Of a stretch of 53,657 nt of DNA, positions 8,101 to 11,100 are shown piece by piece; within the stretch, counting starts at the first letter, position 1; each line of letters begins with the position of its first letter. The notes beneath the pieces are model-generated. The model ran no database searches. It worked only from the letters and a program-made list of their open reading frames with translations, and was not told the origin of the DNA. This stretch comes from Salpingoeca rosetta (Eukaryota; Protista; Choanoflagellata): NCBI GenBank assembly GCA_033442325.1, contig JAWQFM010000003.1, forward strand, positions 2,743,421 through 2,797,077, read 5' to 3'. Position numbers and translations under genes: made by a program.

Positions 8101-11100
8101 NNNNNNNNNNNNNNNNNNNNNNNNNNNNNNNNNNNNNNNNNNNNNNNNNNNNNNNNNNNNNNNNNNNNNNNNNNNNNNNNNNNNNNNNNNNNNNNNNNNN
8201 NNNNNNNNNNNNNNNNNNNNNNNNNNNNNNNNNNNNNNNNNNNNNNNNNNNNNNNNNNNNNNNNNNNNNNNNNNNNNNNNNNNNNNNNNNNNNNNNNNNN
8301 NNNNNNNNNNNNNNNNNNNNNNNNNNNNNNNNNNNNNNNNNNNNNNNNNNNNNNNNNNNNNNNNNNNNNNNNNNNNNNNNNNNNNNNNNNNNNNNNNNNN
8401 NNNNNNNNNNNNNNNNNNNNNNNNNNNNNNNNNNNNNNNNNNNNNNNNNNNNNNNNNNNNNNNNNNNNNNNNNNNNNNNNACACACTCACACACACACAC
8501 ACACTCACACACACACACACACACACACACACACACACACACTCACTCACACACACGCCCCGCGGCCATGTATGTGTGTGTGTTTTGCAGTTTCTCAAGT
8601 TTGATGCGGCGGAGAGCATGGCAGAGCACGAGCAGAACTTCTTCAACAGCAGCGCCGGTGCTGATGGGAATGACGGCGACGACGACGATGACGACATTGA
8701 CGATGACGCGACCACCGTGCTGGTCCTCGGCCTCTCCCTACCCAGCGGCAATCGGTGCGCGGCAATTGTCTGCGAAAAGGGCACAGCTTGAACACAAGGC
8801 CTCATGGTTGCGTTGCCACACACACACACACACACACACACACACACACACGCACACACACGCACGCACGCACGCACGCACGCACGCACGCACGCACGCA
8901 CACACCACACACACCACACACACACACACACACCCTGGCTCGTATTTGATGATTCGTGGTGGTGCGTGTCTGTTCATGGTGTGCAAATCACAGCCCCGGC
9001 ACTGCGTTCATTCACACGACCACACCACAGTCACAGCACGAGACCACGCCGCGCCATCTCATTGTCATTGCAACTGCTGCTGATGTTCACGTGCAGAGAC
9101 TTTGTTGAAGCGGAGCCAACAGAGCCCATCAGCAACATCCGCACGCGCATTATGCAGAAGTTTGCTGAGCAGGGCGAGGACAGGGACAAGCTGATGTCGT
9201 TTGTGCTGGCGCATCCGCACGACGGCCACATTCTTGATGAGACACGCACGCTCGGGGAACAAGGTGCGCTGCGTATGCAAGCACACACCATTTCACGTTT
9301 TTTTAGATGTACCGTCGTTGCGTCATCTGTTTTTGTTCATGACCTGCTTCCTTTGGCACACATGCGCATGCGCACTCCCTCACTCTCTTTTACACACACA
9401 CACACATGCACACACACACACACACACATGCACACACACATGCACACACATGCGACAGGCGTCCAAGTGAAGTCACTGCGGGAGTACAACGAAATCCTCA
9501 CGATGTCGCAGCACAATCAGCACGAACTGTTGAAGCCGGCGACAGTGCAGATGCTCTCAAAGTCCGTGTCACACATTCACACATTCACACATGCACACAT
9601 GCACATGTACGCACTCTGTTAATTTGTCTGCGTACATCCGCCTATCCTTCTTCTCTTTCTTCTCTCTCTGTGCCCCTCTGTGCACTCACAGCCAGTCCAT
9701 GATGCCACGTGCAACGCTGCTGCGTGGCCTTGTGCCGTACGTCCTTGCAGATTGGGCGCCGTTGTCAAGTCGCGCTGGTTCAACCTCGTGGTGACGTTCA
9801 TGGTGCTGGTGAACACTGTGCTGCTCGCCGTCCAGACGGACGCCGGCGCAACAGATGAGGCCGCGTTCGCCTTCACCATTGGTGTGTGTGTGTGTGTGTG
9901 TGTGTGTGTGTGTGTGTGTGTGCGAACATGTATGTGTGTGTGTTAGCGTTTTGTTCATGTTGTATTCTCCGTTGTATGTTGTGTGCCGTGTTGTACTTTT
10001 CTTGCGTTACGAGGGCATGGTCTAGCAGTGTCAGCTGGCGCCTGTGCTGTTTCTCTCTCACGCCTCCTTCCTTTTGTCTCATACCTCTCTTACGCCTCCT
10101 TCCTTCGACTGCACTCATCCCTCCTCAACGTTCAACCAACCCACAGTGGAAGCGTCGTTTGTGGGCCTGTTTGTACTTGAGATGCTGGTGAAGCTGGCCG
10201 GGTTGCGGCCGCACATGTACTTTGAGTCCAAGTTCAACCGATTTGACCTGACGGTTGTGCTGCTGAGTCTGCTTGAGTTGATCCTTGTGCACACGACGGG
10301 TCTGCGCTCCATTGGCATCAGCGCGCTGCGGTCGCTGCGTCTGCTGCGCATCTTCCGCGAGATGAAGCAGTACTGGGAGGACATCAACGACTTTGTTGTC
10401 TCTCTCCTCAACAGCATCGCCTCGATTGTCTCGCTACTGCTGCTCATCCTCATCTACATGGTCATCGTCGCTCTTCTCGGCATGCAAATCTTCGGCGGCA
10501 GGTGCGACCCTCTGTGTATGTGTGGATGATCTCGTGTGTATTTAAATGTGTGTGTGGATAATCTCGTATGTACTTAACTGTGTGTGTGTGTGTGCATGAA
10601 TGCATGTGTTTCTGACTGTATGTGTTTGTGGATGATCGTGTGTGTGTGTGTGTGTGTTCGTCGTGCTCTCGTGTTTGTTTTGCTCGTGCCGCTGCGTCAT
10701 GTTCTCGTGTCCGCATGTCGTGTTTGTGGGCAATGGAGGCGTGCGTTTGCCTCTGCGTATGATGGGTGCACTGATGGACCAACACGATGGCGTGCCACCT
10801 CATCAGCCATACTTGCTCACCCAATCACTTTTTTTCCCATCTCCACCAACAACCCCAACATTTCCCTCCCATTCCCCACCGCCACCGCCACCGTTAACCG
10901 CCACTGCGGTCGCTTTGATTGCTGCCAACCAACAGGTTTGACTTTGAGGATCCAAAGCCGCGCATCAACTTTGACGACTTCTTCTCTGCGCTGCTGACGG
11001 TGTTCATCGTCATTGTTGGTGATGACTGGAACAGCGTCATGTACAACGGCATCCTCGCTTACAACGGCGTCAACAAAGACGTATGTGTGTGCATGTGTGG

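Follow-up and report, generated by a model that had tools for sequence, protein, structure and literature searches.

The calcium channel gene studied here, from the choanoflagellate Salpingoeca rosetta, probably encodes a folded ubiquitin-like domain in the linker between its repeats I and II, an arrangement that is apparently undescribed for a high-voltage Cav channel. The window, by which we mean the whole stretch of DNA analysed, comprises 53,657 nucleotides (assembly GCA_033442325.1, contig JAWQFM010000003.1, positions 2,743,421 to 2,797,077, forward strand); its short exons and (CA)n-rich introns are eukaryotic in character, and a gene for a four-repeat voltage-gated channel occupies its plus strand from about 5.9 to 18 kb. 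Three small exons, here called L1, L2 and L3, precede the exon that encodes the first transmembrane segment of repeat II (IIS1). Our best explanation is that these are coding exons of the organism's single Cav1/Cav2-type alpha-1 gene, that they specify the distal I-II linker, and that the ubiquitin-like domain within them would serve as a built-in docking surface; taken as a whole, we give this explanation a probability of about 0.65.

A first-pass annotation of the window, made by a model from the letters alone, had described three in-phase GT-AG exons at 8591-8754, 9097-9263 and 9459-9562 and had assigned them to the I-II linker of a Cav channel. The exons exist and their translation reproduces the peptide given there; all of the borders hold but one, since the donor GT of the last exon occupies 9562-9563 and the exon therefore ends at 9561. 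Their placement in the linker is upheld as well, the channel being of the Cav1/Cav2 type. The features of the region are as follows, with GC3 denoting the G+C fraction at third codon positions.

8591 to 8754, plus strand: linker exon L1 (acceptor ttttgcag, donor gtgcgc), its frame set by the conserved frame of L2; GC3 0.76.
8663 to 8707, plus strand: acidic run, linker residues 25-39 on translation, with D at 12 of the 15 positions.
8711 to 9478, plus strand: predicted ubiquitin-like beta-grasp domain, linker residues 41-117 (about 77 amino acids), formed by the end of L1, the whole of L2 and the start of L3.
8755 to 9096, plus strand: intron 1, 342 nt, (CA)n-rich, with an in-frame stop at 8789-8791.
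9097 to 9263, plus strand: linker exon L2 (acceptor gtgcag, donor gtgcgc), which supplies the domain with strand 2, then the helix, then strands 3 and 4.
9264 to 9458, plus strand: intron 2, 195 nt, free of stops in frame, so that the open reading frame (ORF) 8792-9619 spans it.
9459 to 9561, plus strand: linker exon L3 (acceptor gacag, donor gtccgt), encoding the last domain strand and then a segment that leads into IIS1.
9562 to 9750, plus strand: intron 3, 189 nt.
9751 to 9881, plus strand: IIS1 exon, in phase with L3.
10147 to 10501, plus strand: exon for transmembrane segments S2 to S5 of repeat II (IIS2-S5), which marks the gene as a Cav1/Cav2-type channel.

L1, L2, L3, IIS1 and IIS2-S5 are thus five consecutive GT-AG exons that share one frame over 308 codons with no stop, and the GC3 of the linker exons (0.71-0.79) matches that of the transmembrane exons. 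L1 contributes 24 leading residues, the acidic run, and then the first strand and turn of the domain; it contains an internal ATG, and a Pfam scan of it returned nothing meaningful.

The middle of the encoded linker resembles ubiquitin, as had been noticed by eye in the first-pass annotation, and the resemblance is statistically significant. Linker residues 41-117 are collinear with ubiquitin residues 9-65, and their BLOSUM62 local alignment score of 58 stands well above that of shuffled sequences (24.4 +/- 4.7; z 7.2), none of 5000 shuffles reaching it; one-to-one phmmer comparison with ubiquitin gives p 1.3e-5 for the window and 1.2e-5 for an orthologue described below. When L2 was searched with phmmer against 1.84 billion representative proteins there were only two matches, this orthologue and a polyubiquitin, the latter being the sole non-orthologous one (E 1.3e-4, a value inflated by its eight repeats). 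Ubiquitin-like core positions are kept, among them those that correspond to K27/D52, I44, G47 and the RTL turn: V91 is matched to I44, A-x4-G to A46-G47 and L-D-E-x-RTL to L-E-D-x-RTL, and the invariant helix residues R, R and K align with ubiquitin K27, K29 and K33. The C-terminal GG is absent and the chain runs on into a conserved segment and IIS1, so that this is an integral domain rather than a conjugatable modifier.

The orthologue, P0001, is an ORF on a 1589-nt metagenome contig in ENA (L001), whose plus strand carries counterparts of L2 (1123-1286) and L3 (1465-1567); no counterpart of L1 was found. The split codons are identical at both borders, the AA/GT donor at the end of L3 is kept, and amino-acid identity to the window is 48% in L2 (L001 1124-1285) and 76% in L3 (L001 1467-1565). 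Nonsynonymous differences per site (pN) are fewer than synonymous ones (pS) in both exons (pN 0.33 and pS 0.63 in L2; pN 0.17 and pS 0.84 in L3), synonymous sites being saturated, while the introns align at no more than about 55%, in a random-looking manner; L2 and L3 are under purifying selection in their reading frame. On its minus strand L001 holds an IIS2-S5 exon (about 83% identical when the two translations are read against each other) and a pore exon of repeat II (about 91%). Because its L2 and L3 orthologues share the contig with these two channel exons, L001 derives from a diverged relative's orthologue of this channel gene. Further homologous-protein searches came back blank or with P0001 alone, and two scans of Joint Genome Institute (JGI) metagenomes gave no relative, the candidates L002-L004 being chance matches.

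The order of exons on L001 is unusual in that the domain II exons (1-1010, minus strand) are inverted and lie upstream of L2 and L3 (1123-1567, plus strand). This is probably a de Bruijn assembly chimera that arose through (CA)n/(GT)n microsatellites, because in the window such microsatellites (8818-8935 and 9883-9922, in the two matching introns) flank exactly those two places.

The identity of the channel itself is given by the IIS2-S5 exon. Its best matches in the PDB are to human Cav2.2 (7mix, E 1.2e-44), followed by Cav2.1, Cav2.3 and Cav1.2, with E-values that range from 1e-44 to 1e-41; Nav and Cav3 channels rank below these Cav1/Cav2 chains, and against Pfam the exon matches Ion_trans (E 3e-23). 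S6 signatures can be read for repeats II (near 11303), III (near 14561) and IV (near 16609). As a four-repeat channel whose nearest solved relatives are Cav1 and Cav2, the gene product is classed as a Cav1/Cav2 alpha-1 subunit. Its readable filter residues are x-D-E-E, that is, D, E and E in repeats II to IV, which fits the EDEE filter published for S. rosetta CaV1/2 (PMC8980814). In domain II the filter reads GDDW, with aspartate replacing glutamate, both in the window (10919-11080) and in L001 (100-255, minus strand), and its occurrence in the two species agrees with that same published filter.

Might the three exons lie outside the mature channel mRNA, as a small nested gene, as cassette exons that are usually skipped, or as decayed exons? 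Such an origin would suit the lack of any protein containing L2 in public collections and the internal ATG of L1. The exons nevertheless lie on the channel strand between channel exons, in phase on both sides and with no stop, and in L3 no stop precedes the donor, which the orthologue shares. They evolve under purifying selection in the channel frame, the relative has its L2 and L3 within 1 kb of its domain II exons, and because their summed length is 434 nt, not a multiple of three, skipping all three would shift the frame. We consider this explanation very improbable, and its nested-gene form was rejected on the grounds of phase, missing stop and conserved donor.

The lengths of the introns are a separate matter: all three (342, 195 and 189 nt) are divisible by three, and retention of intron 2 would lengthen the domain by 65 residues, placed between its strands 4 and 5, with the frame intact.

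Profile and structure comparisons bear on which kind of beta-grasp domain the linker contains. Pfam scans were made on single exons. The window's L2 matched only YukD (E 0.12), and L2 of the orthologue matched Ras_bdg_2 (0.004), UBL_USP40 (0.019), RA (0.028), ubiquitin (0.12), YukD (0.19) and TUG-UBL1 (0.2) and no others, all six families in one common register; all of these belong to the beta-grasp or ubiquitin clan. A profile built from L2 of the two species and searched against the PDB (177,635 sequences) found mostly ubiquitin chains, with E 0.07-0.5 for single ubiquitin. In a feature search of the ESM Atlas all scores were below 0.9 and ubiquitin and Rad60-SLD clusters appeared only at ranks 23-30, so that this result is at most a lead.

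Two AlphaFold2 (AF2) models were also compared with known structures. Construct A3, from the window, joined L2, the in-frame intron 2 and L3, and construct A4, from the orthologue, was L2 with its intronic flanks, so that both are without the real first strand and have intron-encoded residues in place of missing strands. The A3 model had a predicted local distance difference test score (pLDDT) of 67-84 across its L2 part and was poor elsewhere, and the A4 model had a mean pLDDT of 66. With these partial constructs the top 50 Foldseek matches were almost entirely ubiquitin (probability 0.98-1.0, E from 6e-3, 21-30% identity), and a VIA search, where Z stayed below 8, gave among its matches SHANK3 SPN in complex with Rap1, the F0 domains of kindlin and talin and the plexin Ras-binding domain (RBD).

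We judge it very probable that the domain folds as a beta-grasp. The alternative that the likeness is due to chance, and that the linker is disordered with no ubiquitin fold, would account for single-domain database E-values that are all marginal (0.004-0.5) and for the partial nature of the AF2 models; it is hard to reconcile with independent lines that give one fold in one register in two species only 48% identical, and we regard it as highly improbable.

Both the sequence profile and Foldseek set the domain closer to ubiquitin itself than to Ras-association (RA) domains. It could in principle be a Ras-association or Ras-binding module that brings a small GTPase in its GTP-bound form to the channel, which would make it a built-in equivalent of the GTPase control known for animal Cav channels, as might be suggested by the best Pfam matches of the orthologue (Ras_bdg_2 and RA), by the presence of SHANK3 SPN-Rap1, kindlin and talin F0 and plexin RBD among the structural matches, and by the three basic helix residues that are invariant between the two species. 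These Pfam matches, however, fall short of the cut-offs (15.5 against 21 bits for RA, 17.9 against 27 bits for Ras_bdg_2) and are tied with ubiquitin-like domains that do not bind GTPases, the nearest relative by both methods is ubiquitin itself, and the basic residues, aligning as they do with ubiquitin K27, K29 and K33, can be explained without a GTPase. A GTPase-recruiting module would seem improbable.

The remaining questions of architecture concern what lies on either side of the ubiquitin-like domain, namely the site of any alpha-interaction domain (AID), the element to which CaV-beta docks, and the segment between the domain and IIS1. Two further features are needed here, IS6 being the sixth transmembrane segment of repeat I.

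7915 to 8480, no strand: assembly gap of 566 N, within which IS6 and the proximal I-II linker, the site of any AID, have to lie.
9479 to 9561, plus strand: conserved post-domain segment of about 28 residues, which holds an AID-like string and runs into IIS1.

A search of the assembled gene sequence for S6 motifs found none for repeat I, and since those of repeats II, III and IV are present, IS6 is placed inside the gap. The AID follows IS6 on one helix in every known Cav1/2 channel, its YxxWI motif standing about 20 residues beyond IS6. The motif Y..W[ILVM] is absent from all plus-strand frames between 1 and 20 kb of the window, and no match to a looser AID pattern occurs in the visible sequence near the linker; a canonical motif can thus only sit in a gap and, with IS6 itself in the gap, its absence from the visible part is uninformative. 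Conservation of the AID and its pocket extends to choanoflagellates (PMC3972191), and the S. rosetta CaV1/2 channel is reported to carry YXXWI and to need its own CaV-beta for expression (PMC8980814). We therefore place the AID within 7915-8480, where 566 nt could house what remains of the domain I pore together with IS6, the proximal linker with the AID, and one intron. The likeliest full order would then be IS6, AID, acidic spacer, ubiquitin-like domain, conserved helix and IIS1, and with the AID upstream of the spacer the domain does not part IS6 from it.

The first-pass annotation had proposed a different arrangement, in which the beta-grasp module stands between IS6 and a degenerate AID, so that the rigid coupling would be broken; CaV-beta binding would on that view be weakened or replaced. 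An AID-like string without the G and the W is indeed present as it had stated; the string keeps the L..Y..hh spacing of the AID core within a conserved and probably helical segment, and no canonical AID is seen in the assembled sequence. Its claim that this is a degenerate AID is nevertheless not supported, on several grounds: the string starts directly after the last domain strand rather than after IS6, it lacks the essential tryptophan of the Y-x-x-W-I core, it has I-L in place of W-I, its orthologue reads LREYNEIQAMSP, with IQ where the AID has WI, and a profile of L3 searched against the PDB with E up to 10 found no Cav chain and no AID peptide. Nor is the claim of an interrupted coupling between IS6 and the AID supported, given that IS6 and the expected site of an AID are both hidden in the gap and that YXXWI and dependence on CaV-beta are reported for this very channel (PMC8980814). 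This arrangement we regard as quite unlikely.

The post-domain segment is the best-conserved part of the linker, with 25 of 33 L3 columns invariant between the window and L001. It is probably helical, as suggested by AF2 helices of low confidence. It is far more conserved than the domain and has no match in the PDB or Pfam, and it may be a lineage-specific pre-IIS1 helix or binding motif.

Sequence next to the gap needs caution. A pore-helix-like exon start at 7591 runs into a (CA)n run without a donor, and 7640-7914 has a GC content of 0.44 and a GC3 of 0.50; all of 7591-7914 looks unreliable. The string FDGW (7779-7790) was considered as the domain I filter and rejected, as its frame breaks at an A run, it has no Cav match in the PDB and its GC3 is 0.50. 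The domain I selectivity filter is probably inside the gap as well. With 7591-7914 unreliable, this filter is unreadable here, and a D-D-E-E reading would rest on doubtful sequence. This assembly is no safe basis for conclusions about either the AID or the domain I filter, and any public S. rosetta protein that contains IS6 and the AID must derive from sequence that closes the gap.

What might a ubiquitin-like domain do at this position? The visible linker would run from a short segment through a 15-residue acidic spacer, the domain of about 77 residues and the conserved segment of about 28 residues to IIS1, and the acidic run is likely to be a flexible spacer preceding the domain. We propose that the domain is a built-in protein-docking surface, to which readers of ubiquitin-like surfaces (of the UIM/UBA type, or proteasomal, endosomal or ciliary sorting receptors) would bind, and that such binding would set the trafficking or turnover of the channel, possibly in interplay with an adjacent CaV-beta. 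Among functional readings, the one to which we would tentatively give most weight, at somewhat less than even odds, is that the domain acts through ubiquitin-binding receptors on trafficking or turnover. It is favoured because the I-II loop of animal channels is the site at which CaV-beta protects them from the ubiquitin-proteasome system: CaV-beta shields this loop from proteasomal degradation and promotes export (PMC3972191, PMC5034038). CaV-beta is present in choanoflagellates.

A more specific and rather unlikely variant is that the domain would act as a hard-wired, in-cis ubiquitin-type signal, in the loop in which animal channels undergo ubiquitination, that ubiquitin-binding machinery for sorting or degradation would read and that CaV-beta might mask. 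If this were so, the signal would set how many channels arrive and remain at the plasma or flagellar membrane, and a pre-animal channel would here have an ancestral, or an alternative, answer to the quality control that depends on the beta subunit.

The domain might instead act mechanically, by forming a folded plug that stands between the AID/beta complex and voltage sensor II and tunes voltage-dependent inactivation, much like the helix-loop-helix gating brake of Cav3 channels. It does lie directly upstream of the highly conserved segment that leads into IIS1, and structured elements in the I-II linker are known to control gating, as with the gating brake (PMC5095125) and the rigidity of the IS6-AID connection (PMC2654080). 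The 15-residue acidic and probably flexible spacer, on the other hand, separates the domain from the parts upstream, and the identity of the domain core (48%, compared with 76% in the next segment) is what would suit a binding surface, which is constrained less than a gating element. A gating role is in our estimate unlikely, and we retain the docking surface as the preferred reading.

Several points weigh against the explanation as a whole. The exon joins are deduced from splice and frame logic together with conservation. No spliced protein with L2 occurs in the 1.84-billion representative library or in a collection of 5.8 billion proteins; public gene models of this channel may accordingly skip or break at the I-II linker, even though the published channel is reported to have its AID. 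No curated Pfam cut-off was reached, the ubiquitin family scoring 12.6 bits (cut-off 25.4) and YukD 13.6 bits (27), in addition to the RA (15.5 of 21) and Ras_bdg_2 (17.9 of 27) values above. A single orthologue was found, on a contig that seems to be chimeric at a (CA)n run. No AID is visible in the assembled sequence, and its position in the gap is inferred. Finally, the proposed function is put forward by analogy with animal channels.

In the literature that we searched, neither Cav alpha-1 subunits nor choanoflagellate channels are reported with a ubiquitin-like domain, in keeping with the first-pass annotation's statement that this architecture is not known in animal Cav channels, and such a domain goes unmentioned in the accessible part of an AlphaFold-based paper on SroCaV1 (PMC10120453).

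The I-II linker is a control hub of high-voltage calcium channels, where the beta subunit docks, G proteins inhibit the channel, and ubiquitination and quality control by the proteasome take place. Found among the closest living relatives of animals, a folded ubiquitin-like module built into this loop would represent a novel channel architecture, and the insert bears on the origin of beta-subunit-dependent trafficking control. S. rosetta is now genetically tractable. Its channel and beta subunit have already been cloned (PMC8980814).

Comparison with known systems places the insert as follows. Relative to ubiquitin, the domain lacks the C-terminal GG, carries 3 extra residues after the helix and 4 before strand 4, and is apparently connected more briefly to its last strand. 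Proteins with ubiquitin domains such as Rad23, Dsk2, parkin, BAG1 and NP95 have the domain at a terminus, whereas here it is mid-chain in a 24-helix channel subunit. Domains of the RA/F0 type (SHANK3 SPN, kindlin and talin F0, Byr2 RBD) share the fold and tie with ubiquitin in the VIA search, but their identity is only 10-19%, compared with 22-30% for ubiquitin, and no family threshold was reached. The Cav3 gating brake (PMC5095125) is likewise a structured element of the I-II linker; it is, however, a helix-loop-helix that comes right after IS6 in a channel without an AID, while the element described here is a beta-grasp near IIS1 in a channel of the Cav1/2 type. The I-II linker of animal Cav1/Cav2 channels is the same position in the same gene family. 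In animal Cav1.2 an acidic stretch follows the AID, and in that linker as in this one an acidic stretch lies upstream of the variable part. The distal linker of animal channels is described as largely unstructured, whereas in the choanoflagellate channel the same place would be taken by a folded ubiquitin-like module.

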